A DNA stretch of 64,000 bases from Setoptus koraiensis. Its lineage: Eukaryota > Animalia > Arthropoda. Under the pieces are notes generated by a model. It worked only from the letters and a program-made list of their open reading frames with translations. It made no database searches and was not told the origin of the DNA. A program made the position numbers and the translations under genes. The stretch lies in the NCBI GenBank assembly GCA_048013815.1, contig CM106586.1, forward strand, positions 17,732,001-17,796,000. Reading direction: 5' to 3'. This document shows, one piece after another, positions 34,202 through 62,364 of the stretch (position 1 is its first letter; each line of letters begins with the position of its first letter).

Positions 34202-34203
34202 GT

Positions 34204-34216
34204 CCACCCTCTTTTT
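34204..34216 (-). other. Polypurine tract AAAAAGAGGGTGG
   Basis: Purine run on the element strand, 2 nt before the TG of the 3' LTR. Confidence 0.85.
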
Positions 34217-34219
34217 GGG

Positions 34220-35745: not shown

Positions 35746-38342
35746 GGATCGCTGGTGTCATGGTATACCTGTTGCATGAAGTATAAGGCATCGTCTCTTA
35801 TCTCGAACTGTTCCAAGGAATCGATGTCTTCGATTATCTTGAGCAGATCCGGGTCTTTTCCTTGTTCTTCCAACGATATACGTTTAAATGCAAGGAGCTT
35901 CTGGACTCGAGGGCAGAGGACGGACTTAGCCATCTTGTCCGCTTCTTCATTCCCGGGGTCATTGCAATGTCCTTTTGTGTATACCCAATCTATGGTGAGA
36001 TTCTGTTTGGCTCTTGCTAGTTCCAGGATAAGGGATTCGTTTGTCAGGGCTTTGTTCCTATTGTTCTTAAATCCTGCTGTGGTCCATCTGTCGAGCCATG
36101 TGGTTACCGCGTTTATCACGTACTTGCTATCTGATACAATAGTGATTGTTTTCCATTTCTGTTCGTTCGCGATGCGGCAGGCTTGTATAGCGGCGGTCAT
36201 CTCTCCGGTCTGGTTCGAAGGATTGTTCTTGACCTCTCCTTTACAGGAGAGCGAAGGGAACTTGGGAATGTGAACAGCCCAACTAGCACGACATGTGGGT
36301 TTTCCGTTGTGGTAAGAGGCCCCATCTATGTAGAGGACTGCTTCGGGTGGCGTTTTCCCGAGCAGGGACTGCTGTATTTGCTGTGTAGGTACGGGTTCAA
36401 CCACTTTGAATTTGGGGGAGACGTTGGGAGGTAGGTGTAGCATTAAGTTCTCGACCCTCTTGGGCTTATGTTTGAGGTTGAATGCTTTCTGTAGTTCCCT
36501 GGACTGGGTGACGAAGGTGGTCTTCGTTTCGGATAGAATAGGCCCGAACTTGTCGTATGCTAGGACCAGTGCAAGGAGGTTCTTCTCTACATTGGTGTAG
36601 TTGAGCTCTGATGCCGACAATGTCTTGCTGGCTCGTTCGAGGAGGTTGTTGTCCCCGTCGTAGCAGGCCACGTCGATTGATGCCTCGAGGGTATGGATGT
36701 GGACTTCCTTGTCTGATTCCTTGATCGGGATTTGCTGAGGTTTGGCTCCCTTTAGGATGGATTTGATGGTGTCGAGTGCTTGTTGATGGATTTCGGTCCA
36801 TTTAAATTGCTCATCCTTGGAGAGTAGAAGGTTAAGGGGATGAGTGAGTTCCGAGTACCTTGGAATGAAGCGGGCGTAGTAGACTAGGCTACCTAGTAGG
36901 GACCTGACCTCGTGGCGTGATTGTGGAGTATTGTTGGAGTTGAGAAAATCCAGGTGCTCGGGAATCGGTTGCATACCTTCACTGCTGACCTTCTTGCCCA
37001 AGAAGTCTATTTGGGTTTGGAAGAAATGACATTTTGAGGGGTTGATTTTGAGGTTGTATTGTCTGGCACGAATCAGGACCCACTTGAGGTTCGAGTTGTG
37101 TTCTTCTGGTGTCCTGCCGAATACCAGTATATCGTCGATGTACACTAGGCATCGTTCCCCTATTCCGCCTGCGAATATGGTATTCATGATTCTCTGGAAT
37201 ATGGCTGGGGAGTTAGTGAACCCGAAGGGTAAGCACTTATACTGCCAAAGCCCTGTGGGACTTGCAAAGGCGAAGAACTTCCTGGTTTTTGGTTGGAGTT
37301 TAACCTGATGGAATCCTTCTGTGGCGTCCAGCGAACTGAAGTACTTAGCTCCTTGGATGTGCAGCATCATGTCATTGAGGTTTGGTAAGGGATACTGGTC
37401 CCTTACGGTGGCTTGGTTAAGAGGGATGTAATTTACGACGAGTCTTCTCTTGCCATTCTTCTTGGCTACTGTTCTGCAATTTGCTAGGTATGGTGACTGC
37501 GAGGGCTCGATTATTCCGTTCTCTAGGAGCCTCGTTACTTGATCTTCGACCTGCTTTGCGTCTTCGAGGCTATGACGTTTTACCTTCGCGGATATGGGCC
37601 GGTAGTGTTGCAGGTTGATGTCTGGGAGTGGAAGTCGGATGTAGGAACCTCTAAGTTCGTCCGCGAAAACATCTTTGAAAGTATCCTTGAGGCACGCGAT
37701 TTCGTTGTTTGGGTTCGGGAACTGATTAGAGGAGCGGACTGTGATGTATGGTTTCCCTGGTTGAGGGGTATTTATTAAACGTTCTTTCGGAGTAGTACAA
37801 AGGTTTGGTAACTCGGTTGAGGCTGCGAGTGTTTCCTTCTGTGATGTTGAATGGTTTGTGTTCATTCCCGTGCCGGGTTTTGTTCCTGAGGATAGGGCCC
37901 AATTTACTTTAGCTGGTAAGGAATCGAACGATAGGGATCCTTTGAGTTTGTAAAGTAGTGATATCCCTACGACTAGGTCGCATCCTAGTACCTTGGAAGT
38001 GAGGTCGTTGAGTATGAGGAACTCCTCCATTATTGGGACTTGGTTGCTGTTTAGAGGTTTGATGAGTAGTTTGGTGGACTTGGAGATATGTATGGCGTGA
38101 TCTGCGGTTTGAGCTACGATGTTCACAGGTTTTAGGACGTTCTCGATCTCTCTCAGGATTCTGCCTTGACCCGGGATGAATGATGTTGTTGCTCCGCAGT
38201 CAATGACTCCTTTGAGAGGTATTCCTTGTATGAGAAAGGTTTCGGTGATAAGATCTTTGTGAACATCATCAAGGCACGATATGATGTGCTTTGTGGGTTT
38301 GGCCGAATTGCCTTGTAGATTCAGCGACCCCTGAAGTTTAAA
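35685..38342 (-). CDS. pol: pol: aspartic protease, reverse transcriptase, degenerate RNase H (tether), second intact RNase H
   Basis: ORF 35685..38399, entered by -1 frameshift at 38342-38336. Motifs DCG, YIDD, tether 'RASKTLSASELNYTNVEKNLLALV', then RNase H 'LYIDGAS...GEMTAA...VSDSKY...KGH...GNEEADKMA'. Confidence 0.92.
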   Translation of the reverse strand, partial: FKLQGSLNLQGNSAKPTKHIISCLDDVHKDLITETFLIQGIPLKGVIDCGATTSFIPGQGRILREIENVLKPVNIVAQTADHAIHISKSTKLLIKPLNSNQVPIMEEFLILNDLTSKVLGCDLVVGISLLYKLKGSLSFDSLPAKVNWALSSGTKPGTGMNTNHSTSQKETLAASTELPNLCTTPKERLINTPQPGKPYITVRSSNQFPNPNNEIACLKDTFKDVFADELRGSYIRLPLPDINLQHYRPISAKVKRHSLEDAKQVEDQVTRLLENGIIEPSQSPYLANCRTVAKKNGKRRLVVNYIPLNQATVRDQYPLPNLNDMMLHIQGAKYFSSLDATEGFHQVKLQPKTRKFFAFASPTGLWQYKCLPFGFTNSPAIFQRIMNTIFAGGIGERCLVYIDDILVFGRTPEEHNSNLKWVLIRARQYNLKINPSKCHFFQTQIDFLGKKVSSEGMQPIPEHLDFLNSNNTPQSRHEVRSLLGSLVYYARFIPRYSELTHPLNLLLSKDEQFKWTEIHQQALDTIKSILKGAKPQQIPIKESDKEVHIHTLEASIDVACYDGDNNLLERASKTLSASELNYTNVEKNLLALVLAYDKFGPILSETKTTFVTQSRELQKAFNLKHKPKRVENLMLHLPPNVSPKFKVVEPVPTQQIQQSLLGKTPPEAVLYIDGASYHNGKPTCRASWAVHIPKFPSLSCKGEVKNNPSNQTGEMTAAIQACRIANEQKWKTITIVSDSKYVINAVTTWLDRWTTAGFKNNRNKALTNESLILELARAKQNLTIDWVYTKGHCNDPGNEEADKMAKSVLCPRVQKLLAFKRISLEEQGKDPDLLKIIEDIDSLEQFEIRDDALYFMQQVYHDTSDPTENHQPVHYPIPSKGERDG

Positions 38343-39316
38343 CGGTTTGGCCGGCTGGGGCAGTCTGCGTTCCAGTGGTCCCCTTCGCAGTAATAACATG
38401 GTGTTGGTGGCGGACGGTTTGCTCGAGCAGGTGCGCGTTCCTCGTTTCTATAGTTCTGGCGGAATGGGACTCGGGAGTTTCCTTGGTTTAGCGCTGCCGC
38501 TGCGGGTCCTTTATTGTAGGAACTAGGTTGTTCCTTCTCGTCCTCATTTGTTGCTCGTACTGTTTGCTTCTTGAAGGCTGCGAGTATTTCCTCGTTTTGC
38601 TTCTCCTGTTTGGCAACTAGATCTTTAACCACACTTGACATAAGTTCCTTGAATTGGTTTACGTCGAGCCCATGGGACGTTTTCGGGTCCGGGACTTCGG
38701 GTTCTTGGTCGTAACGTCTGGTCAATTTCCTTAATGCTTCAACGGTTGTGACTTCCTTGAGGTCAGTCATCTGATTGATTTTGTGTCTTATGGCAGGACT
38801 GAGGCTTCTGACTATGGCTCGGACTGTTTCTGGTTCGTCCGCGCGGGGATAGGCTTTCTTGTATGTGTAAGAGTAATCGTCGAGGTATAGCGAGAGTGTT
38901 CCATATTTTTGTTGGTCGTAGGTCAGCTCGGTGAGCTTCTTGAATGATCGATCCTCCTGACTCTCTCCCGAGAATTGCTCGAGGATGAGTTTCTTGATGT
39001 CCTTCCAAGGCAAGTGTAGCTTGGGCCTGAGTGTTCCTTTAAACCACGCCCTTGCGGGATTGAGAAATGCTTTGTTGAGCAGTGCGGTCTTTTGATCATC
39101 TGGAAAGCTGCTTGTGAGTTGTTCCCATTTCTCGAGCCATTCGTGTATATTCTCATGTGGGGTGCCGGAAAATTGCGGAGGAGTGATGTGTAGCATAGCT
39201 GATGATAATGTCGCCGATGCCAATTGGCTGGTCACCTGAGTGAGGGACTCGGAAATTAGGGTCGTGAGTTCGGCTGCGTTCATTGTGATATTAGCTTGAG
39301 ATTCTTCGTTGGCCAT
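38321..39316 (-). CDS. gag: gag (capsid plus CCHC nucleocapsid), 331 aa
   Basis: 'PPQFSGTPHENIHEWL' capsid start and zinc knuckle 'CYYCEGDHWNADC'; begins about 50 nt after the PBS. Confidence 0.9.
   Translation of the reverse strand: MANEESQANITMNAAELTTLISESLTQVTSQLASATLSSAMLHITPPQFSGTPHENIHEWLEKWEQLTSSFPDDQKTALLNKAFLNPARAWFKGTLRPKLHLPWKDIKKLILEQFSGESQEDRSFKKLTELTYDQQKYGTLSLYLDDYSYTYKKAYPRADEPETVRAIVRSLSPAIRHKINQMTDLKEVTTVEALRKLTRRYDQEPEVPDPKTSHGLDVNQFKELMSSVVKDLVAKQEKQNEEILAAFKKQTVRATNEDEKEQPSSYNKGPAAAALNQGNSRVPFRQNYRNEERAPARANRPPPTPCYYCEGDHWNADCPSRPNRLNFRGR
38336..38342 (-). promoter_or_regulatory. -1 ribosomal frameshift slippery heptamer T TTA AAC
   Basis: X XXY YYZ in the gag frame (CGT TTA AAC), 4 codons before the gag stop. 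A -1 slip gives FKLQGSLNLQG, the pol frame. Confidence 0.85.
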
Positions 39317-39369
39317 GGTGATATCGTTGGGATTCGGGTGACTTAGGAGGATTGACGGACTGATGTTCT

Positions 39370-39387
39370 AACCACGCTCTGCTACCA
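39370..39387 (-). other. Primer-binding site TGGTAGCAGAGCGTGGTT (initiator tRNA-Met)
   Basis: 18 nt, 2 nt inside the 5' LTR boundary, complementary to the ...CTCTGCTACCA 3' end of animal tRNAi-Met. Confidence 0.9.
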
Positions 39388-39389
39388 AC

Positions 39390-40019
39390 TTTAGAGATCG
39401 CGGACAGTGGAAGCGTGTTTAGTATGTGACTGGGTAGATGGCGTGAGGTCTGCTGGTGTGAGATCGAGGAAGGTAAGGTCTGCTGATGTGAGGTCGAGTA
39501 AGGTAAAGCTGGTTGTGGTGAGGTCGAGTAAGGTAAGGCCTGTGGTGGTGAGGTCGCGTAAGGTAAGGCCTGTGGTGGTGAGGTCGAGTAAGGTAAAGAT
39601 GGTTGTGGTGAGGTCGAGCAAGGTAAGGCCTGTTTTGGTGAGGCCGCTGGAGGTAAGGCCTGTTTTGGTGAGGCCGAGGAAGGTAAGGCCTGTTTTGGTG
39701 AGGCCGAGGAAGGTAAGGCCTGTTTTGGTGAGGCCGAGGAAGGTAAGGCCTGTTGACGAGTGATGGGTTAGGGATTCTGTATGTAAGAGTTTATAATAGT
39801 ACTTTATTGGTGACCTACGATGTAATGACAATGAAACAATAAAATCGGGTTGTATTTATACTAATTGCCCTGATGCTCCCTCTGACGGGAGAGGTTTACA
39901 ACTGGTGGCGACAACTAGTGGCGACACTTGGTGGCGACACTTGGTGGCGACAACTGGTGGCGACAATCTATTGCACCGCATGGATGTAATGTCTGTGCAT
40001 GCGGGTTCGGATCATCACA
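39390..40019 (-). repeat. 5' LTR (630 bp)
   Basis: On the element strand: 5 x 13-bp U3 repeats (39901-39965), TATAAATA (39860-39853), AATAAA (39808-39803), then 10 x 30-bp units (39449-39748). It ends ...CTAAA rather than ...CTACA. Confidence 0.92.
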
Positions 40020-43817: not shown

Positions 43818-46205
43818 ATGAAGCATGACATTTCGGAATTATCATCAATATTCAACAACCTCGTTGTAGACGACACATCAGGATAAGAATACACATCTTC
43901 AAATTGCACTATACAGAATAATATCACATTACTGCTATTGATATAAGGATGACATTCTCAATATTCACTCAAGGAACATAATTCATCTCAATCAGTGTAA
44001 TCTGTTACTTGGAAGGATACCTATTATGCAAGGTTAAACGACTTGGAAATTGCACAACCTATTGTGATATTATGGTACAGCGGGCCATATTTATACATCT
44101 TTGCTACTTAAATATTCATTATTAACGAATCACTTCTAATCAGCTTCACATATGTATACATATCTCGTGTATACTATATGTGAAGGCTGAAGTGATAATG
44201 ATAATAATGAGTGAAAAAATATTAAATTATTAATCAAATTAGCGGAGTGAATTATAAATAAATTCTAAAAAATTATATTGAAAGATATTAGATAGAGTAT
44301 TAAATAATTAAAATCATAGATGGATTATTGCTATTTATTGAATTGAAATATTTCCTATATATATAAATATATTAAATATAATTTATTATATGAAATAATA
44401 ATATATATATATATTTTATATATTGATTATATTAATATATATATTATGTAGATAAACTGAGATAAAATAAATGCTGATATAATATAAATAAAAATAATTA
44501 TATAAATTCGGGAAGTGAAATTTATTATAAACTTTAATTAGCAAAATGATTATTATAAATATTAATGAATTATTAAAATATGTTCATATAGCAATATAAA
44601 ATTAAATAAATATATTATATGAAAAAACTTTAAACAATGATTTTGATATAAATCACTAATGAAATTTATAATCATATTCAATATTTATTAATATACATTA
44701 TGATTGAAATTATACGCTTGATTAAATTTTGAATAAATACTAAATTATAAAAATTACTTATCTATATTATAATTATTAAGGTGAAAAATAATAACTGATA
44801 TATTAAAAATTATAATGAAAAATATTAATGACTTAATTAATATATGATAAAATCTGATTATATAATAAATGTAATTATGCAATATAGATTTAATGATATA
44901 TATATAATTATTAAGATATGATAAACATATTATAACAATATAACATATTTATGATAATGATATAAAATTAAATATAGAAATAAAAATATATTCAAATTAA
45001 TTTTGAGATTCTGAATTATTCAAGAGATGCTTAATGGGAGGTGGAAGTCGAACTAATAATATAATATGAAATGCTATATTATAAATTATTATAAAATATA
45101 TGAAAATATTATGAAAATTCGAAATTATCATATATCTGTTGTGAATATTAGATAGCTGTTTAATATAAATTCATAATATAAATATATCATAGTATTAATC
45201 TATACATCTATATAATAAAATTAATTATATAAATTAAAAATATTGACAGTAAAATATTATTGAATTAGTGATTATTAAAATACATAAAAATTATTCAGGA
45301 GTGCGAATTAACTATAAATAAAATAATATGTTAAATAAATATAAAATATATATTAATGATAGGAATATTAATTACAAACTGATAATTAAATAAATATAAT
45401 ATAAATTATATAGATATTGGAGTAAATTTTTGATTATAAAAAATATTACATATAGACAAAACAATAAATATTATGAAATGTGATGTAATTTTAAATGAAA
45501 TAAATTAATAGAAGTGTTTGATAGGTTATTTAAAATATTATGAATATTGAATACAAAATAATATAAAACAATTATAAAATTAATTTGATTACATATTTTC
45601 GGATATAACAAAATAATATACTGAAAATATAATATAAATTAAAAATTATTACTATTTATATATCTAAATTGATATTGATATTCAATTTATTATAATTGAT
45701 CAGAATCTTAAATATTCTGAATAATGAGTAATTCGAGCGTGGCAACGCTCGATGTGGAAGTCCTATTGAAATATTATAATTTATAATATATAATATTATA
45801 AAAAAATTAAATAATAAATAAATAAAAATATATTAAAAAAATATATTAATATTTATTATTAATAATATTATATTATTAAAAAAAAAAATTTAAAATGATA
45901 ATTAAAATTAAATATTAAATATTTTTAAAAAAAGAATAAATTAATATAAATGAAAAAAATAAAAATATAATATAAAAATATTTAAAAATATTATTAATTT
46001 TTATTATTATATAATTAAAAATATTATAAAAAATATAAAAATATTAAATAATAAAAAAAATAATATTATATAATTTAAATTATTATTTAAAATTATAAAA
46101 TTTAAAAAATAATAAATTTTAAATAAATTTTTAAAATTTATAAATATATATATAATTTAAATAAAAAAATAAAATTTATTAATTTTAAATAAAAAAAAAA
46201 TAATA
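43818..46205. other. Block of progressively increasing AT content ending in a nearly pure A/T tail at a contig end
   Basis: Composition falls visibly from ordinary host-like sequence to almost no G/C after about 45772; all frames inspected contain stops. Origin unknown. Confidence 0.8.
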
Positions 46206-46705
46206 NNNNNNNNNNNNNNNNNNNNNNNNNNNNNNNNNNNNNNNNNNNNNNNNNNNNNNNNNNNNNNNNNNNNNNNNNNNNNNNNNNNNNNNNNNNNNNN
46301 NNNNNNNNNNNNNNNNNNNNNNNNNNNNNNNNNNNNNNNNNNNNNNNNNNNNNNNNNNNNNNNNNNNNNNNNNNNNNNNNNNNNNNNNNNNNNNNNNNNN
46401 NNNNNNNNNNNNNNNNNNNNNNNNNNNNNNNNNNNNNNNNNNNNNNNNNNNNNNNNNNNNNNNNNNNNNNNNNNNNNNNNNNNNNNNNNNNNNNNNNNNN
46501 NNNNNNNNNNNNNNNNNNNNNNNNNNNNNNNNNNNNNNNNNNNNNNNNNNNNNNNNNNNNNNNNNNNNNNNNNNNNNNNNNNNNNNNNNNNNNNNNNNNN
46601 NNNNNNNNNNNNNNNNNNNNNNNNNNNNNNNNNNNNNNNNNNNNNNNNNNNNNNNNNNNNNNNNNNNNNNNNNNNNNNNNNNNNNNNNNNNNNNNNNNNN
46701 NNNNN
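46206..46705. other. Assembly gap (500 N)
   Basis: Directly visible. Confidence 1.
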
Positions 46706-47050
46706 AAAGATAAGATTAAAGATACCTATAGGAAATTTAGCCACTCATTGAAGAAAGTTCATAGAAAGGAGGTCGGTTCGAATCCTGAATACGAGCATCT
46801 CAGTGAATATTTGCAAAAAATGCCCAAAGATGAAGACGGCCGAAGTTCAGGTTTCGGTACATTGCCGAAGAGCACTTGGAACATCGCCTCCGTATACAGA
46901 GTTTTTTGTTATAGGAAGATATAGGACATTTAAAGATTAATAAAAACGATATCACATGTTGTGATCTCTAAAGACGTGTTAGTCCGTGTCCTGAGCTTTG
47001 CATGAATTAGTGCGTACATATGGGTATCAACTTTGAGTTCATCAAAAATA
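46706..47050 (+). repeat. 345-bp direct duplicate of 33107-33451 (RNMT 3' coding end and 3' UTR) without the LTR element
   Basis: Apparently identical by eye at an offset of 13599; continues CTAGTAGC at the point where the first copy enters the LTR. Confidence 0.92.
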
Positions 47051-47193
47051 CTAGTAGCTTTCAAATTTGCCCCGCAAATCCACCAACTGAGCATGCTCAT
47101 AGAAACATTTGTTGCTGATCTACTTTTGGACGTTCGATTGCTTTCACTGAATTGTATTTTCTTACACGAACATTATGAAATTGTCTTCAAAAT

Positions 47194-48984
47194 ATGCGTT
47201 TTTTAAGAAGGGCCAAGAAGCCCGTTAAATTCAGATTCACTCTATCGATTAGAGAGATTATGGTGGAAGGGTCGAGTCGTTGGCAGCCAAGAAGCTTGAG
47301 CGTCAGATTGCGACGAAGAAAAAGACAATATTCAATTGATCCTAAATCGTGGGAGCCAACATTACGCAACCCGTACCGAGGTTTGACATTTTGGTCACAA
47401 GCGGCTAACGTGCAATTTGATGTAACATTATACAAAAACTCTATAGATGCATTTGAAGAGAAATTGTGGAAACTAGATGTCCTAGATCATGAACACAATG
47501 GTAAAATAAAAAGGATTGCAACAATAAAATTGGATCTTAGTCTTCACACTACCTCAAATATCGCCCTTGATAGGTTGCCTTTAAAGATATTGGAGCCAGC
47601 CATTGAATCAACCATTAGCCTATCTATAGGTGTTGAACCAGTGAACAAATCATCCGACCATACCACTGAAGAAGCATCCGAAAAGTTACCCCAACCTGAA
47701 AAGTTATTCCCAGAAGTGTCTAAAGAACCAACCACTGCAATAGTTGTTGATAAAATTGTCGATAGCCCAACTAAAGAAGGAACATCTGAGGATGCACCCG
47801 AAAGGTTACCCCAACCTGAAAAGTTACCCCTACCCGAAAAGTCATCTCCAGAGGTGACTAAAGAACCAACCACTGCAATAGTTGTTGACACGATTGATGA
47901 TAGCCCCGCAACCAAAGAAGGAACATCTGAGGATGCACCCGAAAAGTTACCCCAACCTGAAAAGTCATCTCCAGAGGTGACTAAAGAACCTACCACTGCA
48001 ATAGTTGTTGATACAATTGTAGACCGCCTCGCACCTACAGAAGAAACCCCTGAGGAAGCCAGAGCACGTCAACTTAGAGAGAAAGCTAGACAACTTATTG
48101 CAACAGCAAGAAGAGGCGAGCTCGCAAAACCAAGTAGAGGCTCAATATCAGCACATTCCACGCCAAAGAAAGTCAAAAATGGATTTTCAAGTATATCCAG
48201 TTTTGAAACTGCCCGACAAAACTCAATTGAAATATACGATTATCCAACTTCCAATGATGAAGAGGAGGAAGATCGGTTAGATATAGCATTCAGAAGGAAT
48301 TCAGTTGCTACAAGATCGGCTAGAATGCGTAGATTCCGATTTTACCAATTCAGGCGGATTCATGATGACACTCAAGCTGCTGAAGCCTCAACAATAGAAC
48401 CTTCATTCAAATCCTGTGATTCTGAGCAATCTATCTTAGTACCAAGAGAAGATGTTATTAAAGGTAAAATACCTATGGGTCGCAAAGAGTCTTCTTGTAC
48501 GGGAGACGACCTCAAAAGTTTAGAGGAGGAACAGAAACAAATAGAAGAAAAAACAGTGTTGCTTAAGAATCAATTTATGGAACTAACAAATAACTGCCCT
48601 GAAGGATCGGACACTGAAGAGCAACAAAAGAAATTATTGAAAGAACTGTGTGAATTAGTGAATAAAAAGAACGATGTTATAAGGCGTCAGATGCAATTAA
48701 ACATATTGGAAAAGGAGGCAACATTGGAAAGGACATTCGAGCAGCTAGATAAAGAGTTGAGAAGTATCATGTTGGTTGAGGAATCCAAGAAAACTGAAAA
48801 TCAAAAGCAAAGGGAAAAATATCTTCTTGATGAGCTCGTCGCTTTGGTAGAAAAGCGCAATGAACTCGTCCACGATTTAGATGCCCAGGAGAAAGCTATC
48901 GAGGAAGATAATAATCTTAGAGAAAATTTGCGTCACGTCAAACTGGGAGATGTGGCCGATGATCAAAATTGTCGCATACACTAA
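47194..48984 (+). CDS. EHBP1: EHBP1-like protein (NT-C2 plus bMERB/DUF3585, C-terminal CaaX-like CRIH)
   Basis: 'KFRFTLSIREIMVE...WQP...WEPTLRNPYRG' and C-terminal 'LVNKKNDVIRR..QL.ILEKE..LER...KTE.QK.RE..LLDELVALVEKRNELV..LD.QE'. Confidence 0.88.
   Translation: MRFLRRAKKPVKFRFTLSIREIMVEGSSRWQPRSLSVRLRRRKRQYSIDPKSWEPTLRNPYRGLTFWSQAANVQFDVTLYKNSIDAFEEKLWKLDVLDHEHNGKIKRIATIKLDLSLHTTSNIALDRLPLKILEPAIESTISLSIGVEPVNKSSDHTTEEASEKLPQPEKLFPEVSKEPTTAIVVDKIVDSPTKEGTSEDAPERLPQPEKLPLPEKSSPEVTKEPTTAIVVDTIDDSPATKEGTSEDAPEKLPQPEKSSPEVTKEPTTAIVVDTIVDRLAPTEETPEEARARQLREKARQLIATARRGELAKPSRGSISAHSTPKKVKNGFSSISSFETARQNSIEIYDYPTSNDEEEEDRLDIAFRRNSVATRSARMRRFRFYQFRRIHDDTQAAEASTIEPSFKSCDSEQSILVPREDVIKGKIPMGRKESSCTGDDLKSLEEEQKQIEEKTVLLKNQFMELTNNCPEGSDTEEQQKKLLKELCELVNKKNDVIRRQMQLNILEKEATLERTFEQLDKELRSIMLVEESKKTENQKQREKYLLDELVALVEKRNELVHDLDAQEKAIEEDNNLRENLRHVKLGDVADDQNCRIH
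47679..48060 (+). repeat. Three imperfect coding tandem repeats of about 40-47 aa (EKLPQPEK..PEVTKEPTTAIVVD..)
   Basis: Visible at both DNA and protein level; boundaries approximate. Confidence 0.85.
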
Positions 48985-53423: not shown

Positions 53424-54518
53424 CTAAAAGTACATGTCATCTTCATAATAGTCATCATCTGGTATGGTATCAATGGGAGGCATAAGGTTGTTCTTAAAAA
53501 TAATCATAAATTTAGCTACAAAGGCTTCAAAATGATAGATTCTTTTTGACCCAAGTCTCATGTTGTGCTCATAGCACGCAGCTAATTCAAGCAACGAATG
53601 TTTTGTCCTTTCGTCGCCACATTTTAGCAATTCTATAACGATATGTTTGAATATTAATTCTGGTGGTATTAAATGAGCCTCGAGTTCATAGAATGCACTT
53701 CTAATTTCTACCAATTGCCGAACAGTTTGAGAATGTATTATCATCTTGGCGGTCCTCCGCACAAATTCCAACCAAGCGGGTTGAGCCAGTTCCTGATTAC
53801 CCGCCAAACCTCGTACTTTCATCGTTTCCAACATGAGTAAGGCTCTTCGAAGGTTCCTGTTTGATTCTTGGGCTATACGTTCAGCCAGTTTTCGATCTAA
53901 AAATTTGCATTGCTCTGCTGAACCAACAGTCATCAGTATTTTAACGATCTCTTCCTCTTTTGGGGCTCCTACACGTATCAACAGACATCTAGACTTAATG
54001 GGAGCAATGATCCTACTAGAAGATTCGGCACATAATATTAAACGGCATGTCGACAAATACTTTTCCATAGTCCTCCTCAGGGCATGTTGAGCATCTTTCG
54101 TTAGGCAATCTGCATTAACTATAACCACAGTCTTAAAGCTAATACTGTTGTTGTGCAATGAGGCACAACTGGCCGTTTGCTTGATCAATTCTTGAATGAC
54201 AATCTTGTCATAGATACCAACATCGCTGGGATTGACTTCTATGTGGTAGTTGGAATTTATAGTTTTCAATTCAATCTTCTTCTTTGATGGGGTCTCAAAA
54301 GTCTCATTCTGAAAGTGTACCTTTTCCACAGAAGCTCCATAGATTTCTTTGAGTATCAAGTCGATTCGGGTCTTTTTGCCGGCTCCATTAGGACCAAAAA
54401 TAAAAAGGTTTGGAAAGTCGCCGCTATTGATTAGGTTTTTCAGGTGAGTAGCCTGGCTCTTATGATAGTCCAAATTTGATAATGAGGTAGGTTTGTACTT
54501 ATCACAGAAGAGTGCCAT
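53424..54518 (-). CDS. RFC3: Replication factor C subunit 3 (38 kDa; yeast RFC5)
   Basis: 'MALFCDKYKP', 'GDFPNLFIFGPNGAGKKTRI', 'SNYHIEVNPSDVG', 'LTKDAQHALRRTMEKY', 'HNMRLGSKRIYHFEAFVAKFM'. Likely ATG at 54518. Confidence 0.95.
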   Translation of the reverse strand: MALFCDKYKPTSLSNLDYHKSQATHLKNLINSGDFPNLFIFGPNGAGKKTRIDLILKEIYGASVEKVHFQNETFETPSKKKIELKTINSNYHIEVNPSDVGIYDKIVIQELIKQTASCASLHNNSISFKTVVIVNADCLTKDAQHALRRTMEKYLSTCRLILCAESSSRIIAPIKSRCLLIRVGAPKEEEIVKILMTVGSAEQCKFLDRKLAERIAQESNRNLRRALLMLETMKVRGLAGNQELAQPAWLEFVRRTAKMIIHSQTVRQLVEIRSAFYELEAHLIPPELIFKHIVIELLKCGDERTKHSLLELAACYEHNMRLGSKRIYHFEAFVAKFMIIFKNNLMPPIDTIPDDDYYEDDMYF

Positions 54519-55557
54519 GACTGTTGAATGTGGTTGGTTACAATAATAAAATAATAATGATACTAATTTTTGATCCAACTAACAATAATGTGTAATGTAT
54601 TGAATCACGAAAATTGATTTCTTTAATCAGTTGAGATGGGCTATATCACACACGCGCAACAACTGTTGATAGGCGCATGTATTCAATACAATAGCAGCGT
54701 GTGCACCGAGCGCGACGAGTGCCGTTCGCCAGTTGTGCTTTTTGAATGACAGAGCCACAAGATAATCTCACTTTGGCGTATCGATGTGCGCCGGCATGCA
54801 GTTGAGCGCCATGAGATGGCGCGAACGGGCAAAAGATTGTGCTGCTTGTTGATTCACAATCAATTGTTGATGATGCCACCGATGATTATGTTGGCAAACG
54901 AAAAATATTTAAGCAGATGCGACAGGGAGATGTCGAATGTGTGTGCAGCAGCGCACACACAATGTTGAGTTATTAATCTGCGTGCGTGCATTTGTCCCCA
55001 CAAGCAGTTGGCGGCATCATTGATTTGTCCAACAATTCAGTTCAGTTTGGTTGTGAGTTTGGTTCAACTCGGCTCATCTTGCAAGTTGCAACCTTGGCCA
55101 AAGCGACCATTAGCGGGGAAGGAGGCAAAAAAAGAAGGAGCAAAAGAATTGGTCGTTGTTATACGAAGCAGCGGAGGGAGCAGCAGCGCGAGAATAAAGA
55201 CGCTAGCGGAGGGTCATATATTATGGCTGATTGGAGGACGAGTGCAAATTCCTTAGTTATCGTCTCTCAGTCGATGACCAGATGTCGTTGGTGGTGGTTG
55301 TGGTGGTGGTGGCGGTGGTGGTGGTGGTGCGAGTGCTAGTGCTGCTAGTGCATGATGGTGCCGTCGATGTTATTGTTGGACACAAACTTGATGCTGCTTC
55401 AACTGCTGCAATAATGGCAGCGGCAGCGGCAACAACAACAACAATGGGGGATGAAGGCGAAGAAGAAGAAGGAGACAACGAGAAAGCAATCGAGGGGGTA
55501 GGTGCAATTTGACCCTCGTTCAGCAACACGAACAACAACAAGGCATTCAAATGAGAC

Positions 55558-55582: not shown

Positions 55583-56381
55583 TGCCTATATGGTGTGATA
55601 GTTGGTAGATGGTAGTGGCTGCTGGCGGTGCGGCTGGCGCTGCTGCTGCACACAAACACATAAACGGCACAGCCGTTGCCAATTGGACGTTGGAAGTTGT
55701 TGCTCGCCTGTTTATAGTTGTTGCTGTTGCTGATAGCAGTTTTCGTTCATTTCTCCCAATTCACTCTCTACAGTTTGTCTGTCTGTCGGTTTGTTAGTTC
55801 GATGGTCCGTCCGTCCCTCCAAGTCAAATAAAGTGTGTGTGTGTGTGTGCAAGTCTTTGTTCGTTGCACGTCCGTCCGTCCGTCTCTCGTTGTGTGTGTG
55901 TGTGTGCCTATGAGCGCAAGCAGGTCTGTCTGTTACCGCCGCTGCCACTGCCACCAAATCGAATTGAATTGAATGTTTTAGAATATAGAATATTGTTGTT
56001 CAATAATAGCAACACACACACACACACACACACACTACATATAACTTATCTGCCATCTTAATTCAGCCTTATATAATAACAATAATTAAAAGAAGAGACA
56101 TTAATACAAGTTGCATCACTTGAACAACCAAAAGAAAAATGTCCAACAACAATTATTCGATTAGAGTTTCGCTGCAAGCTAGTAGCTAATTCGACAACAA
56201 TAGTAATGCGTCTGCTATAGACCTAATATAATTAATTGTGCTATATCTCGCGTAAGCTAAGCAGAAATTTGATGATTTCAGCGCACACACACACAAATAA
56301 GTTCTATTAGTTCATAGTTAAATCATTCTATTCTTCCGTTATTGATCTATTATTGAGCACGCATTATCACAAATTCAAATC

Positions 56382-59300
56382 ATGAAGTTTAAACATCTTT
56401 TAACGTACTTTTGTACGATGTCATCGCTACTATTAACAGTAATATTATTTATAGTTGTCACCAATGGTAATGAAATTCCTAATTATAATTATAATCACAA
56501 AAACTTCAATCAAGCAAGAGATAATCAGCATTTCAGAGAGTCAAACGCCGAAAAGGAACTAGTGAAACTCGACAGAAATAATTTACTTCGGGCTTCGCCT
56601 CACACCTTACAATATCATACGGCATCACCGCAAGCTGGCCCCCATCACATTAGTCCAACTATAGTAACCAACAACAAAAATCATCATTACTCACTCTTGA
56701 ACAACAATCCATGTCATGATAATCAACAATGTTTGAATGGCGGCGAATGTATCCCAATAGTGTCTAATTACCAAAAATTATTCCCACTTAATTCGACATC
56801 ATTGACAACATCACAATCGTATCGCTCAACTACCAACGATGATGATCTATTCTATTGCAAGTGCCCAATTTCCTATGTTGGCGATTTCTGTCAATTCTCC
56901 AATCCGTGTTATTCAACAAAATGCCAAAATGGTGGCACTTGTATAGTACATCAATCGGCCAACATTTATGAGGCGCCTCGTTTCTCATGTAAATGTGCCA
57001 TTGGTTACACGGCCAGCTTATGCGAGATAGCGCAACCGTCCATATGTCGCAACAATAACCCCTGCCTTAATGGAGCCACTTGTCAACTAACAACATCCGT
57101 CAATGATTACAAATGCATTTGTGCCGATGGTTATCGTGGTCAACATTGTCAAGACATCGATCATTGTAAGCCAAATTCTTGTCACAATCAAGGCAAATGC
57201 ACCAGCACCGAAGATTCATTTTACTGCAACTGTACACAAGGTTTCACAGGAGAGACTTGTCTCGAAGATATTGATGAATGTGCACTTGAAAGTGATACAG
57301 ACAACCAACAACACGACAATGCTATTATAACAGATCTAAATTTGCATGCCTCTTTGAAGAATTATCATCACAAATTGAGCAACGACAATACCTCCTTAGC
57401 ACGTGTTGATCACGAAAAAGGTGTCTGCGGTCAACATGGAAGATGCTTCAATACATTGGGTTCATTCAGATGCGCTTGTGAACGAGGTTGGACAGGGCCC
57501 CGATGTGAAAGTCGCTACATACCTTGTGACCCATCGCCTTGTCTGAATGGTGGAACATGCTCTCAAGATCTCACCACACTTTTTTACAGGTGTTCCTGTC
57601 CATCGGGTTTCAATGGTACACATTGTGAATTAAATATAGACGATTGTGGATCACATCAATGCCAAAACGGAGCAACATGTATAGATGGTATTAATAGCTA
57701 TGCATGTGCATGCCCGTCTCAATTCAATGGAACTTACTGCGAGGGAGACGTAAATGAGTGCGAGCGAAGGCCTAACCTTTGCCGTAATGGCGCTACATGT
57801 TACAATAAAGTCGGCGGTTACGATTGTATATGTGTAAATGGCTGGACTGGACATGATTGTAGTGAAAACATCGACGATTGTGCAGCGGCTTCATGTCTCA
57901 ATGGAGCAACTTGCATAGATCGTGTTGGTGGTTTCGCTTGTGAATGCCCGCCAGGAAAAACGGGATTATTGTGTCATCTAGAAGATGGATGCTTCACCAG
58001 ACCGTATGAAAAAAGTCCTTGTAGCCCTAATTCAACATGTGATAGTTCACCGGTAGACGGTTCGCCGATTTGCACATGTCCACAAGGTTTCGAAGGTGCA
58101 GATTGTTCCACAGACATCGATGAATGTAAAGCCGGTTCACCTTGTGAGCATGGGGGATCCTGTGTCAATACTCCAGGATCTTTTAGATGTGACTGCCCGG
58201 TAGGTTTTAGTGGTGCACGTTGTGAAATCAATATCAATGAATGTGACGCTCATCCTTGCCAACATCTTGGAACATGCCTGGATGAACGCGGTGGATATCG
58301 CTGTGTTTGTGCTCGAGGTTACACAGGTTTACAATGTGAAATAGATATTGACGAATGCGCATCGAATCCGTGCCAAAATAATGCCACTTGTGACAATTTA
58401 GTAGATGCATTCAAATGCTACTGTCCAAGTGGTTACTCGGGTGAACGATGTGAGCTACCGAATATTCAGGAATTCAATAACATCGAGCCGCACGCCTTAC
58501 TTACCATTATAAGAGAGCCTGCTTATATCACCGAACATGAATCGTATGAATTGATACGAAAGCTATCTTCCGAAACTGGTACAATATTGACGCTGCAAGG
58601 CTTCCGAACAGTGGACAATGGAGGCAAAACTGAGTTGGAATTAAAAGTAGATAATGATAAATGTCGTGGAAAATGCATCAGCACAATAGAGGATCTTATA
58701 GAAAGAATTGAACGCATAACTGAGAATATCCCTAACGAACATTTGAGAATCAAATCATCATTATTGAATCCAGAACCTGAGCCTCCGCAAACTTATCAGT
58801 GGTTCGTTCTCACTTTAGCGCTCATTACATTATTCAGTGTTATATTTTTGGTCGCATCAGGTAACAGGCAAAAAGTCAAAGCGAAAGCCATCACATGGTT
58901 CCCTGAAGGTTTCTTCGAAACAAGTAAGTGCGCTGGCGCACGAAGAGATCCGACATCTAAGACAGGAAAACTTGGTGTGAGCACGCTTCAAGCATTGAAG
59001 GGTAATTTCTGTCGTCAGGGAGGTCGCGCTGATCAAAGAGGAGCCCGGACAGTATCCGGCCGAGGAATTCTCAAAACTAATACCACAGGTATGACTGAGA
59101 TCCCCCAAAATAATGGAGGCATTTATAATGAACCATATGAATCATATAGCGATTGGCAATCGCAACAGTATGAATCGTGCGGTAACACTGAAAATGAGTC
59201 CATGGCCACAAATCGACACCCAATGACACCACCCACAATGGACATTAATCCAGTTGACATAGAAGGGCCCCATGGTATGACTCCACTAATGGTGGCCTCA

Positions 59301-61337
59301 ACGCACGGTGCTCCCTTCGCCAGAGGAAAAGACGAAATGATTGATTTGGTTACTTATGGTACTACAGGTGAAGTAAAAAAAGGAATGATTGATGGAGACC
59401 CGTCTAATGGAATTGTTGAGGATCTCTTGAACAAAGGTGCCCAAGTCAATCGACCAATGGAAAAAAGTGGTGAAACCGCTCTACACATGGCAGCTCGCTA
59501 TAGACGCGTGGATAATGCACGTGGATTGTTAGAGGGAGGGGCAGACGTAAATGCTCAAGATGCTGATGGGAGAACTCCTCTTCATGCTGCCATTGGTGCA
59601 GATGCCAGAGGAGTCTTTGAGCTACTTATTAGAAATAGAGCCACAAATTTGAATGCTCAGGCTAAGGATGGAACGACACCGCTTATGATGGCTGCAAAAA
59701 TTTTAGAACAATCAATGCTTGAAGAATTGATCATGAATGATTGCGAGATAAACTTACATGATTGTAATGGAAAAACAGCACTGCATTGGGCTGCTGCAAC
59801 TGACTTCGCCTCTGCTGTTCGTATATTGTTAGCTAGTGGAGCTAATAAAGATTCGCAGGATCACCTTGGAGAGACACCCCTGTTCTTGGCTGCGCGTGAA
59901 GGGGCGAAAAACTCAGTCGAAATTTTACTGCAACATAACGCAAATCCGGATATTGGTGATGAAATGGAAGGATGCCCGATCGATATTGCTCAAAAAAGAA
60001 ATCATACAGATATTGTGCGCTTATTGAAAGAGCATGTCCCCAATTCTCACTCTTCTGTCAATCAACAACAGTCTAGACAGAATCTACTATGTCCACTCTC
60101 TCCAAGTAGTTACGACGAAAATAGTAATGGAAGTTCAGGACAGCAGAGCCATTCACAAAACTATCAGCAAAATCATTTTCACAGTCACAGTTCTGGAGGC
60201 CGTCAAATGCACAGCAAATCAAATTTGACACGAAGTAATTCGACAAAACCATTGCCACAGGAAAATGCTCATCCTAAATCTCAACACTGTAAATCAGTGA
60301 TGATGATAAAAACAGAAAACGAGCAAGATGAGAATCATAGCATGAATCAATCAATACTGGGCCGAAGAGCAACTCAGTCAACAAGTAGTAGTCATCAAGC
60401 TGTACATGCAAGCGGTCCAAGTAATCATTGCCGATCGAGTAGCACTACGGCTGGAAATTTCATTAGTAAATCAACAAATAATATCAGTCCAGCCAACGGA
60501 TACCATAACAAGCATCACCATCAATCTATTAACGTCTTGAACAAAAATAATTCTAATGGAAACCACCACAACATCCCTCCACCGTTGCCCCCTCCTCGCA
60601 ATCAGCCCCCTCCAATCAATACTCAATTCACTTATGACTATATATCCTATCCACCAGCATCTAGTGCACCAAATTCAGCCACATTATCGCCGTCACTTGT
60701 ATCACCTTTGGCAACTCAGTATGGAGTTTTAAACTCTAATCACGTAGTTATGCCTGCGACCCCGAACTCCTTGACAAACTCCTTGTCTCCTGTATCATCA
60801 TCCATGATGTCACCCCCCGCCAACTCATCGATAGGTTTATTGAATTCACCTACAAAGACAACGCCATCAGTTTCTATGCACCATAATCAAGCGGATCAAC
60901 AAAATCAAGCGCACCTGATCTCACCCCCCTCATATGAGGAATGTGTTAGGATTACCCAACAGCAGATGTTGGGTAACAACAATGGAAATAATCAACACCA
61001 TCAACCGCATTCGACACAAAATCGACCACCATATTGGACACATAATCAAGAACAGCATGCACACCCAAACGTCGGCAACTTGATTGATACAAGTCACAAT
61101 AACACAAATACGCTCATCAACAACAATAATAACAATGGCAATAATAACACAGCAGATCTTTACAATGTTCCGTCATTCAAACATTACATGACCCCATCAC
61201 CTGATTCTCCGTTTAGCATGGACTCATCCGTGGAGAGCCCGCCCGGTGCATATAGTGATCAACAATATCAAAATCATACTATGTCCTTTCCTCAAAACAA
61301 TGTAACTAGCCTTCAAGAGGCAGGAGTCTTTATTTAA
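56382..61337 (+). CDS. N: Notch receptor, miniaturised: signal peptide, 13 EGF repeats, no LNR, degenerate HD (NOD/NODP), TM, RAM, ankyrin repeats, PEST-like tail
   Basis: EGF8-12 are Notch-typical ('[26 protein letters not shown]', '[27 protein letters not shown]'); RAM 'ITWFPEGF'; ANK '[12 protein letters not shown]', '[12 protein letters not shown]', '[17 protein letters not shown]', '[10 protein letters not shown]'; PEST-like 'YMTPSPDSP'. Single 1651-aa ORF. Confidence 0.93.
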   Translation: [1651 protein letters not shown]

Positions 61338-62364
61338 ATTTTGTAACAAACCATATTTTGAGAGGTAATAAATCATCTCTTCTCATTAGGGAGGGATTGT
61401 AAATATCGTAATTTAAATCTATTATTCTGTTTAGGGCACAATTGATGGTTACTCGAGGGGCGAATATTCTTCTGTAGAAACGTGGAACACAGCTTATTTC
61501 TTGCAAGGCGTTATTAAGATGTGACTGGCAGAGGTCTGTGAGTTCCTTAACGATTGGTTTAATTTTCTCTGTGTCGAGTTGCTTCTTAAAGAAATCTCTG
61601 GGTTGGCAGTTGTGTTTTCTTAGAACGTCTTTGGGTATGTAGCAACAATTCTTCTTCGCATTGTATGGTATTCCTCTGATTATATTAGACAGTCCATGAG
61701 CAATACCCAAACTATGAGATATTGTCTGTAGGGTAGTAGCCAACCTGTGGCTGTCAACGTAGTTATATAGGATTTCTCTTACAAAGTGACATAGAAGTAA
61801 ATATATAGAGGAGTTGGACTTGATGCAGTAGTCTGTCAACTCATTGATATCTTCAAACTGCTGATAACCCAAAACTTTCGGACCTATTCGAGAGCCGAGT
61901 AAGTCTCTAACCCAAACTCGTGTGCTAGGATCTATTTGAATACATTCGAATACTTCAATCAGTTCTTTGGCTACTGGTGCAAATTTGTAGTAGGCGCTCT
62001 TCTTCTGTTCGTCAATGTTATATATATCTCTCTCTACCAATATTTCATCTAACAGTTTAGCCCAGAAGTGAAACCTCAGTTTAGCTCGATCAGTGTCTGT
62101 GGTGGCTTCTCTGACTAGTGAGAGTTCTACATTGAATGCTCTCAGAGCGAACGCAGCTCGTCTTACCCGAGGTTCGTCAATCACCAGAGTGTTGAGATAG
62201 TTTTCTCTATCGTACTTTTTGACATGGTTGATACAATATTGTTGTGAACTGTTCTCTCCGCTGTTTGCACTTGAGAGACCTCTGATCAATTTATGATGTG
62301 AGATTATCTGAGGAAAAAGGATATAAAAGCGTCGATTTGGCTGGCACAACATTACTGACATCAT
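61330..62364 (-). CDS. NDUFAF6: NADH dehydrogenase complex I assembly factor 6 (squalene/phytoene-synthase-like; sicily)
   Basis: 'YCINHVKKYDRENYL...RRAAFALRAFNVEL..VRE......AKLRFHFW' and 'IIRGIPY...CYIP'; basic N-terminus consistent with a mitochondrial presequence. Confidence 0.9.
   Translation of the reverse strand: MMSVMLCQPNRRFYILFPQIISHHKLIRGLSSANSGENSSQQYCINHVKKYDRENYLNTLVIDEPRVRRAAFALRAFNVELSLVREATTDTDRAKLRFHFWAKLLDEILVERDIYNIDEQKKSAYYKFAPVAKELIEVFECIQIDPSTRVWVRDLLGSRIGPKVLGYQQFEDINELTDYCIKSNSSIYLLLCHFVREILYNYVDSHRLATTLQTISHSLGIAHGLSNIIRGIPYNAKKNCCYIPKDVLRKHNCQPRDFFKKQLDTEKIKPIVKELTDLCQSHLNNALQEISCVPRFYRRIFAPRVTINCALNRIIDLNYDIYNPSLMRRDDLLPLKIWFVTKFK

Follow-up and report, generated by a model that had tools for sequence, protein, structure and literature searches.

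An LNR-less Notch ortholog in the eriophyoid mite Setoptus koraiensis, at one end of a graded series of LNR loss

The LNR repeats of Notch are generally pictured as a diagnostic domain of the receptor and as a clamp over the S2 site that gives way when ligand pulls, and work by Sanchez-Irizarry in 2004 reportedly tied them to the prevention of ligand-independent cleavage. LIN-12 and GLP-1 retain three LNRs despite their few EGFs. Together with the EGF and ANK domains, LNRs are considered diagnostic of the family, in which LIN-12 and GLP-1 carry about 10 to 14 EGFs (Gazave et al. 2009, PMC2770060). Work in synthetic biology suggests that the clamp might be replaced or might even be unnecessary, a conclusion that is disputed and rests on engineered receptors. 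SEA-like domains put in place of the NRR behave as ligand-dependent switches, CDH23 and PCDH15 domains are force-dependent switches in Notch chimeras, and SEA-like domains lacking a structured N-terminal neighbor (MUC1, IA-2) are constitutively shed (PMC6586460). Diverse domains substitute for the NRR in the fly wing (bioRxiv 10.1101/2024.07.10.602225), and human Notch1 without an NRR still depends on DLL4, ADAM10, and gamma-secretase (bioRxiv 10.1101/2025.11.11.685779). A natural ortholog with no LNR, set beside relatives with three, two, and one, amounts to a deletion series made by evolution for how much of the NRR is needed, and it could bear on the capacity of the HD by itself and on the control of basal activity.

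We examined a window of 64 kb (the whole stretch of DNA analyzed) from the Setoptus koraiensis genome, which is about 40 Mb in size. The window holds a Notch ORF that runs without interruption for 1651 amino acids plus a stop codon. The encoded protein is laid out as a signal peptide, 13 EGF repeats, a linker of 12 to 15 residues, an HD-like domain, a TM helix, a RAM region, ankyrin repeats, and a tail rich in S, N, P, and Q (Table 1), with a low-complexity N-terminus of about 80 residues after the putative signal peptide. Like canonical Notch (Drosophila Notch, human NOTCH1-4, and C. elegans LIN-12/GLP-1), it is a type I protein with EGF8-12, an HD with two cysteines, a TM segment, a RAM WFP motif, and ankyrin repeats. 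In contrast to canonical Notch, it has no LNR-A, -B, or -C, just 13 EGFs, and a shortened HD that lacks the S1 loop and on which the Pfam NOD and NODP models are silent. The single TM segment is followed by RAM, with its WxP motif, and by an ankyrin domain on the scale of seven repeats, so that the WFPEGF motif and the Pfam Ank families bear out the retention of RAM and ankyrins claimed in a preliminary description of this DNA. The tail ends in an ...AGVFI motif common to other eriophyoid Notch proteins.

Table 1. Features of the Notch locus, with positions in the window.
Feature	Residues	Position	Strand	Basis
Replication factor C subunit gene, upstream of Notch, synteny anchor		53424..54578	-	ORF list; F. 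setiger comparison
Notch coding sequence, complete, single exon		56382..61337	+	ORF list; Pfam EGF x13 and Ank families; best homologs all Notch
Putative signal peptide	~1-29	56382..56468	+	Hydrophobic core read from translation
EGF repeats 1-13	111-690	56712..58451	+	Cysteine parsing; mapping to 36-EGF NOTCH1
EGF1 loop insertion, 35 aa, Cys3-Cys4		56751..56855	+	Cysteine parsing
EGF5 insertion, 48 aa, Cys1-Cys2		57282..57425	+	Cysteine parsing
EGF8-12, ligand-binding core		57741..58337	+	Best matches EGF8-11; EGF12 second best for repeat 12
Candidate EGF12 C2-xxxx-T-C3 motif CQHLGTC, O-fucose consensus position	626-632	58257..58277	+	Translation
Linker, last Cys of EGF13 to HD strand b1	691-705	58452..58496	+	Series alignment
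HD-like domain, ~90 aa, b-a-b-b-a-b	706-793	58497..58760	+	Alignment A1, AF2, VIA-align
Conserved HD cysteines C761 and C765 in DNDKCRGKC		58662..58676	+	Invariant columns, alignment A1
Strand b4 and 9-aa juxtamembrane spacer; positional S2 equivalent	787-802	58740..58787	+	Alignment A1, secondary structure
TM helix	803-826	58788..58859	+	AF2 helix, hydrophobic sequence
Basic stop-transfer and RAM region; WFPEGF	839-844 (WFPEGF)	58860..59261	+	W, P, G, F invariant in alignment A1
Ankyrin domain	~1000-1220	59379..60041	+	Pfam Ank, Ank_2 to Ank_5
C-terminal tail, S/N/P/Q/H-rich		60042..61334	+	Composition

The preliminary description had counted 13 EGF repeats, and two approaches concur with that count. 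The EGF region contains 78 cysteines, or 13 sets of six (C11, in the signal peptide, is left out of the count), and Pfam finds 13 EGF stretches in addition to the ankyrin repeats. The proposed colinearity with canonical EGF1-13 holds in part. Against the 36-EGF NOTCH1 (P0003), repeats 7 to 11 each match EGF7-11 best, repeat 2 corresponds to EGF2, and EGF12 is the second-best match of repeat 12; the block EGF11-13 aligns locally to approximately residues 410-527, which is canonical EGF11-13, in most full-length Notch proteins tested. Repeats 1, 3 to 6, and 13 are numbered by colinearity only. The tandem array thus includes the EGF8-12 core with EGF11-12. The large insertions reported in EGF1 and EGF5 are real, and the EGF12 motif CQHLGTC was located as described. 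As read from the translation, the calcium-binding motifs and the EGF12 fucose motif are retained.

Between C690 and the predicted TM helix lie 112 residues, close to the 115 or so estimated earlier, with just two cysteines (C761 and C765). Pfam gave no match to PF00066 (LNR), PF06816, or PF07684. When the juxtamembrane segment was searched by itself with the threshold relaxed to E<=10, the only hits were EGF tails and noise, and a cryptic LNR, NOD, or NODP at that threshold was therefore rejected. An LNR regular expression had no match in six frames across the whole window, and in positive controls it recovered 3, 3, 2, 2, 2, 2, and 1 LNRs. With Pfam and the control-validated expression both empty, the claim that the LNRs are missing stands and divergent LNRs are excluded; none of the three LNR repeats typical of the Notch family is present. 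The linker that joins EGF13 to the HD is indeed very short, as had been claimed. At the same site, the aligned relatives hold about five EGFs plus LNR-A/B/C, or LNR-B/C, or LNR-C.

The stretches described earlier as NOD-like and NODP-like prove to be homologous to the HD of relatives and vertebrates. In alignment A1, the segment matches mite and vertebrate HDs column for column; both cysteines are invariant, L, R, L, D, N, and A are near-invariant, and the motifs LR.LS and L..DN..C are present. Its predicted elements are b1 (706-712), a1 (718-732), b2 (735-744), b3 (749-757), a2 (769-781), and b4 (787-793). The protein therefore has an HD with two cysteines beside the membrane, despite the silence of Pfam NOD and NODP. 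AlphaFold-type modeling, which had been proposed as a check, gave block-mean pLDDT values of about 78 to 93 over the domain in both AF2 models, and VIA-align matched the modeled fold to the HD of the NOTCH2 NRR (Z 8.8) and to the NOTCH1 NRR (Z 7.2 and 6.8). It also matched CDH23 MAD28 (Z 9.1) and MUC16 SEA (Z 7.3), and a Foldseek search against the PDB returned weak generic ferredoxin-fold matches (best E ~1e-3) among which the Notch1 NRR ranked 18 and 46. Fold match alone is insufficient, and it is the sequence alignment that identifies the domain as an HD. Together with PCDH15 MAD12, these cadherin and SEA domains share its b-a-b-b-a-b fold near the membrane (Z 7.3-9.1) but have no detectable sequence relationship to it, whereas the mite domain shares its ancestry with the HD of Notch.

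The S1 furin loop, which is not universal in the family, is absent here and in all acariform sequences of alignment A1. The preliminary description was correct in this respect but not in denying any RxxR site, since RIER (residues 775-778) fits that pattern; it sits inside predicted helix a2. Drosophila Notch does without S1 cleavage, and HD-core mutations are non-activating there (PMC13436963). Strand b4 aligns with the vertebrate '...KIEAV.SE' strand, and by position the S2 cleavage site would fall within b4 and the juxtamembrane spacer.

Comparison with related mites places the gene at the end of a graded series. The relatives comprise at least eight other eriophyoid sequences with intact ORFs, one of them (P0122, loci L005-L006) from two independent samples. 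Three LNRs plus about five extra EGFs are present in Fragariocoptes setiger (KAG9510069, P0118) and in contig L001, two LNRs plus a remnant of LNR-A in P0124, two in Aceria tosichella (A0A6G1SNF6, P0135), P0122, and P0134, one in P0121 (L004), and none in the S. koraiensis gene. Across the series, EGF13 is always the last module before the deletion, whose far end coincides with the edge of another module. These proteins share with the LNR-less one the short S1-less HD, RAM, ANK, C-terminal motif, and break after EGF13, and their genes are likewise compact and largely intronless; they differ in keeping 3, 2 (one with the remnant), or 1 LNR, and most lack EGF1-6, which the LNR-less gene keeps. 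The reported loss of EGF14-36 is accurate in that the array stops at EGF13, but it was overstated as a special feature: because the relatives have only about five EGFs beyond EGF13, most of the EGF loss predates the S. koraiensis lineage. In the text of the Aculops genome paper, Notch is named only in two reference titles, and it is not named in the first 200 of the 225 supplementary files.

In the phylogeny, P0121 groups with the crown clade (support 99/96), while the LNR-less gene and F. setiger are basal, a topology that implies at least three independent reductions. A deletion shared with P0121 was rejected on this placement; the AU test also rejects a joint clade, marginally (p=0.046). 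Just one NRR intron was found, that of F. setiger, which lies at the boundary of LNR-A with LNR-B; in the two-LNR species, the deletion has its 3' edge at this same point. One might speculate that LNRs were lost exon by exon, and the idea stays speculative because the NRR of Leptotrombidium has no intron. Whether eriophyoids repeatedly and independently dismantled the NRR from its N-terminal side (3, 2, 1, and 0 LNRs), with S. koraiensis now running all of its Notch signaling without LNRs, is in our judgment an evenly balanced question. The series shows a receptor central to development being miniaturized at the level of its domains, in animals that rank among the smallest.

How the LNR-less receptor functions we infer from these features. 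The preliminary description had reasoned that it would be either constitutive or under a novel autoinhibition. We consider it probable that the gene encodes a Notch ortholog whose NRR is reduced to a bare HD-type domain and which is still ligand dependent, gated by the S1-less, SEA-like HD. Delta or Serrate would still be bound through EGF8-12, and ligand endocytosis would then pull on the EGF rod. Strain from this pull would fall on the HD, which is small and covalently continuous, and on its 9-aa spacer, exposing an ADAM10/Kuzbanian site around b4 and the spacer, after which gamma-secretase would free a normal RAM-ANK intracellular domain acting via CSL. What holds the receptor "off" may be the fold of the HD, in which the S2-equivalent strand is part of the sheet, rather than an LNR clamp, and LNRs could have become dispensable stepwise during the extreme miniaturization of eriophyoid mites. 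Identity to five eriophyoid relatives is highest in EGF8-12 (59-74%), followed by ANK (56-66%), the RAM region (42-55%), and the HD (30-40%); this top conservation of the ligand-binding core favors a ligand-dependent receptor. Weighing against gating by the HD alone, AF2 did not confidently pack EGF13 on the HD (pTM 0.44). The engineered delta-LNR receptors, SNAPS chimeras, and NRR-less human Notch or synNotch-type receptors resemble the mite protein in joining an EGF part, with no LNR clamp, to a segment near the membrane that is SEA-like or short. Since several receptors without an NRR or with SEA-like substitutes still depend on ligand, ADAM10, and gamma-secretase, cleavage does not have to become ligand independent when LNRs are lost. 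Those are laboratory constructs in heterologous cells or fly wings, whereas the mite gene is natural and, probably alone, runs development. If S. koraiensis does run all of its Notch signaling through this receptor after repeated NRR loss in eriophyoids, a bare S1-less HD would be enough to serve a living animal as a switch gated by ligand and force. The LNR clamp would then be an accessory that evolution can dispense with, and the pathway would not require it at its core.

As the main alternative, the receptor could be leaky or constitutive: S2 would be chronically accessible, the ectodomain would be shed, and basal signal would be high and merely modulated by ligand, with control moved to receptor transcription, trafficking, fast NICD turnover, cis-inhibition, or NRARP-type feedback. 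The textbook role of LNRs in preventing ligand-independent cleavage speaks for such a receptor, as do the constitutive activity of LNR/HD-interface mutants in Drosophila (PMC13436963) and the predicted flexibility of the EGF13-HD linker, whose residues 697-701 have an AF2 pLDDT of <50. The HD is also the fastest-evolving folded domain of the protein; relative to ANK it is somewhat more diverged here than in pairs at a comparable distance (ratio 0.46-0.62 versus 0.59-0.78), which could reflect relaxed constraint as readily as re-tuning. We nevertheless regard this reading as unlikely. The strongest constraint in the protein is on EGF8-12, a pattern difficult to reconcile with an irrelevant ligand; the fold of the HD, both cysteines, and core motifs are kept; and the published assays of NRR-less human Notch1 found it ligand dependent.

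A canonical, LNR-bearing paralog elsewhere in the genome could instead do the essential work, leaving this copy specialized or redundant. Planarians do have Notch-like paralogs without classical domains beside canonical ones (PMC10970066). We find a paralog improbable, since the gene occupies the syntenic Notch position: in F. setiger, an RFC-subunit gene likewise lies upstream of Notch in the same orientation (L003, 5533-6690). The LNR-less protein falls inside the eriophyoid Notch clade with support of 100/100, and by both phylogeny and synteny the gene is the positional Notch ortholog of an eriophyoid (gall or rust) mite. Arthropods without whole-genome duplication normally carry one Notch, and an HD+RAM query against 1.84 billion representatives returned only 11 proteins, with a single Notch-type entry for F. 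setiger. The exact protein is absent from the protein collection, which holds no near-identical match, so the collections are silent on any second Notch in this genome.

That the gene is decaying, non-signaling, or a decoy serving only as a ligand sink is more improbable still, and we give this reading very little weight. The large EGF1 and EGF5 insertions and the long low-complexity tail might suggest it, but the 4953-nt ORF is free of stops, 78 of 78 EGF cysteines are kept, the calcium-binding motifs and the RAM WFP persist alongside the conserved ANK domain, and the same allele of the LNR-less Notch recurs in several data sets as Logan contigs.

A collapse or deletion in the assembly at the EGF13/HD junction has next to no chance of being the explanation, since EGF13 and the HD meet in frame, where one module ends and the next begins, as happens in the relatives too, and since independent contigs that agree across the junction refute the artifact. 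These Logan contigs span 58372-58977 or more (X2/X3, 56200-59923; X4, 56200-59735; X7, 58372-58977), come from three separate data sets with different studies and organism labels, and show no differences, indels, or joints inside the gene and no loose ends across 58372-58977. The assembly of the LNR-less Notch gene is correct, and the gene itself is intact and has no introns. A 57-nt unitig from X2/X3 that joins 59923 to 60600 has its halves on opposite strands and no GT-AG, and it was rejected as either an intron or a simple deletion. The X7 contigs are fragmentary and confined to the gene, which is compatible with mRNA, though X7 may or may not be an RNA library; they cross, unspliced, an in-frame GT...AG interval (57292-57399) in the DNA of the EGF5 insertion.

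The Setoptus koraiensis window holds an intronless Notch gene, a single unbroken open reading frame encoding 1651 aa. In a Pfam scan this protein showed 13 EGF stretches together with an ankyrin domain, and cysteine parsing agrees, assigning the 78 cysteines of residues 111-690 to 13 six-cysteine EGFs (signal-peptide C11 excluded). Repeats 7 to 11 each score highest against EGF7-11 of the 36-EGF NOTCH1 (P0003), repeat 2 matches its EGF2 best, and repeat 12 has EGF12 in second place; when aligned with most of the tested full-length Notch proteins, the block EGF11-13 falls at the canonical EGF11-13 position. The array is colinear with EGF1-13, as the preliminary description had it. Also as described, EGF12 keeps the motif CQHLGTC in translation, and large loop insertions are present in EGF1 (35 aa) and EGF5 (48 aa). 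The Ca-binding D/N-x-D/N-E-C motifs of the EGFs are kept.

Between EGF13 and the membrane, C761 and C765 are the sole further cysteines. Pfam found no match to the LIN-12/Notch repeat (LNR; PF00066), NOD (PF06816) or NODP (PF07684) in the 1651-aa protein, and a separate scan of the segment from EGF13 to RAM gave nothing but EGF tails and noise at E<=10. LNRs were counted with a pattern validated on controls, together with an EGF12-to-RAM alignment, and this count likewise bears out the claimed absence of LNRs. Logan contigs from the sequencing data sets X2/X3 (probably one data set filed twice), X4 and X7 cross the EGF13/HD/TM junction, with zero differences inside the gene and no indel, joint or loose end at the junction. 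An assembly artefact at this position is ruled out by the agreement of separate data sets. The X7 contigs, which may be RNA or DNA, are fragmentary and limited to about 56034-61395, a pattern that would fit a low-abundance transcript; they run unspliced through an in-frame 108-nt interval of the EGF5 insert (57292-57399; 5' GT, 3' AG, pyrimidine run before the AG) that may be a mini-intron left unspliced or spliced optionally. In X2/X3, contig depth falls at 59923, from 55 to about 25, and a 57-nt unitig (depth 15.7) links 59894-59923 to 60600-60626 on opposite strands without GT-AG; a library chimera could explain this unitig, as could a structural variant of the ANK/tail region.

Coordinates of genes, predicted structural elements and supporting contigs (window positions, residues of the 1651-aa protein, or positions on relatives' contigs L001 and L003)
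Feature	Position	Strand	Remark
S. koraiensis Notch	56382-61337	+	
Replication factor C subunit gene	53424-54578	-	just upstream of Notch
Replication factor C subunit gene, F. setiger	L003 5533-6690		upstream of F. setiger Notch, on the minus strand
Notch, F. setiger	L003:8805-13387		
Notch intron, F. setiger	L003:10641-10729		about 90 nt
Notch, L001	L001:9527-14176		
HD b1 (AF2)	residues 706-712		
HD a1 (AF2)	residues 718-732		
HD b2 (AF2)	residues 735-744		
HD b3 (AF2)	residues 749-757		
HD a2 (AF2)	residues 769-781		
HD b4 (AF2)	residues 787-793		
TM helix (AF2)	residues 803-826		after a 9-aa spacer
Logan contig X2/X3	56200-59923		
Logan contig X4	56200-59735		different study and organism label
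Logan contig X7	58372-58977		low depth, third organism label

Between EGF13 and the membrane lies the heterodimerization domain (HD)-like stretch previously proposed. A 32-sequence alignment places residues 703-795 against the HD of mite and vertebrate Notch; in it both HD cysteines are invariant and an L (b1), the R of LR.LS (a1), L..DN..C (b-strand) and an A (a-helix) are near-invariant. The vertebrate-type long S1/furin loop is absent from every acariform Notch in this alignment, including the non-eriophyoid P0041, P0082 and P0125-P0130. An RxxR furin site had been reported as lacking; RIER exists at 775-778, inside helix a2, and an S1-type loop is indeed absent. AlphaFold models, run as the preliminary description proposed, predict a confident b-a-b-b-a-b domain (block-mean pLDDT about 78-93). 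EGF11-13 are also confident, the EGF13-HD linker (697-701) has pLDDT <50, pTM is 0.44, and the models predict no packing between EGF13 and the HD. Foldseek matches, taken alone, were weak and generic. Structural comparison with VIA ranked CDH23 MAD28 (Z 9.1) and the human NOTCH2 NRR HD (Z 8.8) at the top, with NOTCH1 NRR (Z 7.2 and 6.8), PCDH15 and MUC16 SEA close behind.

The top full-length matches of the protein are Notch proteins without exception, the informative relatives being short mite proteins: P0118 (Fragariocoptes setiger, eriophyoid), P0081/L001, P0121, P0122, P0123, P0124, P0134 and P0135 (Aceria tosichella). Because the gene upstream encodes a replication factor C subunit, as in F. 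setiger, this gene is the positional orthologue of Notch; a different downstream block, PSF3 and TSEN34, is common to relatives' contigs L001, L004 and L005/L006. Trees of EGF8-13 plus HD-to-ANK unite S. koraiensis and its eriophyoid relatives in one clade (support 100/100), with S. koraiensis and F. setiger at its base in unresolved order. This placement, with the compact genes free of introns, indicates an eriophyoid mite. P0121 groups with the crown clade containing Aceria (99/96), and an AU test on a clade of S. koraiensis and P0121 gave p=0.046; P0121 is apparently not the sister of S. koraiensis Notch.

Comparison with related mites reveals a graded series. After EGF13, L001 and F. setiger have about five EGFs, then LNR-A, B, C and HD; P0124 has an LNR-A remnant (CTFDGGDC) before LNR-B, LNR-C and HD; P0122 (recovered from two independent samples), P0134 and P0135 have LNR-B, LNR-C and HD; P0121 has LNR-C as its sole LNR before the HD; and in S. 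koraiensis the HD follows at once. Judged from sequence, S. koraiensis carries a natural Notch orthologue without LNRs, the end of a 3-2-1-0 series. The 5' edge of every deletion falls within a few residues of the EGF13 end (G-E-R-C-E-F/L), and the 3' edge is a module boundary. Three LNRs are present in outgroup mites and in the two eriophyoids that are basal or conservative, and P0121 is not sister, which together imply at least three independent LNR reductions (in the S. koraiensis lineage, in P0121 and within the crown); the P0124 remnant suggests a fourth reduction. EGF14-36 are absent from S. koraiensis Notch as claimed, and most of this loss predates its lineage, having occurred by the time of the eriophyoid ancestor. 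EGF1-6, kept here, are lost in most relatives: most other eriophyoid Notch proteins pass from the signal peptide to the EGF7 or EGF8 equivalent (L001, F. setiger, P0122, P0124, P0134, P0135), and P0121 keeps EGF2-3, followed by the tail of EGF7. Which end of this receptor was trimmed differs between lineages. The single F. setiger intron lies exactly at the LNR-A/LNR-B boundary, and because this position coincides with the 3' deletion edge in two-LNR species, it hints that LNR modules were lost exon-wise. In Leptotrombidium the NRR is free of introns, which keeps exon-wise loss speculative.

Removal of the LNRs is classically expected to cause ligand-independent Notch cleavage, which would make this receptor leaky and compensated downstream. 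Against this stands the distribution of constraint: in comparison with five relatives, EGF8-12 has the highest identity (59-74%), followed by ANK (56-66%), RAM (42-55%) and HD (30-40%), and because this ligand-binding core is the most constrained part, the receptor is arguably still ligand-dependent. Measured against its ANK domain, the HD of this gene has diverged slightly more than in comparably distant pairs, which is compatible with relaxed constraint or re-tuning alike. Drosophila Notch becomes constitutive through LNR/HD-interface mutations, in favor of leakiness, and is not activated by HD-core mutations, which the authors attribute to a lack of S1 cleavage (PMC13436963); the eriophyoid HD is also one covalent chain. 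SEA-like domains of dystroglycan, PCDH15, CDHR2 and, to a lesser degree, CDH23 can replace the NRR (LNRs plus HD), giving switches dependent on ligand, metalloprotease and gamma-secretase, and those SEA-like domains that lack a structured neighbor (MUC1, IA-2) are constitutively shed (PMC6586460). In the fly wing, many unrelated domains function in place of the NRR (bioRxiv 10.1101/2024.07.10.602225). Human Notch1 stripped of its NRR reportedly keeps its dependence on DLL4, ADAM10 and gamma-secretase (bioRxiv 10.1101/2025.11.11.685779). Given these LNR-less and SEA-like precedents and the constraint on EGF8-12, we consider it fairly probable that S. koraiensis Notch is an HD-only, force-gated receptor, in which the bare HD would keep the receptor gated and force would open the gate. 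Leakiness, the main rival to HD-only gating, seems rather unlikely. The observation behind the preliminary description (one ORF, 13 EGFs, an HD-like stretch, no LNR) is confirmed, and its interpretation, constitutive or force-independent cleavage or else a novel autoinhibition, is supported in part.

Our literature search found no description of LNR loss in eriophyoid Notch; the nearest precedent found is planarian Notch-like paralogues without classical domains, beside canonical copies (PMC10970066). With its ready-made natural constructs, the eriophyoid series opens to comparative experiment the question of whether Notch can be kept off without LNRs.

Elsewhere in the window, gene packing is extreme: the Notch stop and that of a convergent 344-aa ORF (61330-62364, -) overlap by 8 nt (61330-61337). 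Positions 44000-48000 are highly AT-rich and lack long ORFs, GC being 0.15 across 44-46 kb and 0.26 across 46-48 kb (about 0.41 elsewhere). At 34000-40000, where three minus-strand ORFs follow one another (34220-39316), GC is about 0.49-0.50, GC skew is strongly positive (0.21-0.27) and AT skew is negative; this tract is probably coding, repetitive and strongly biased.
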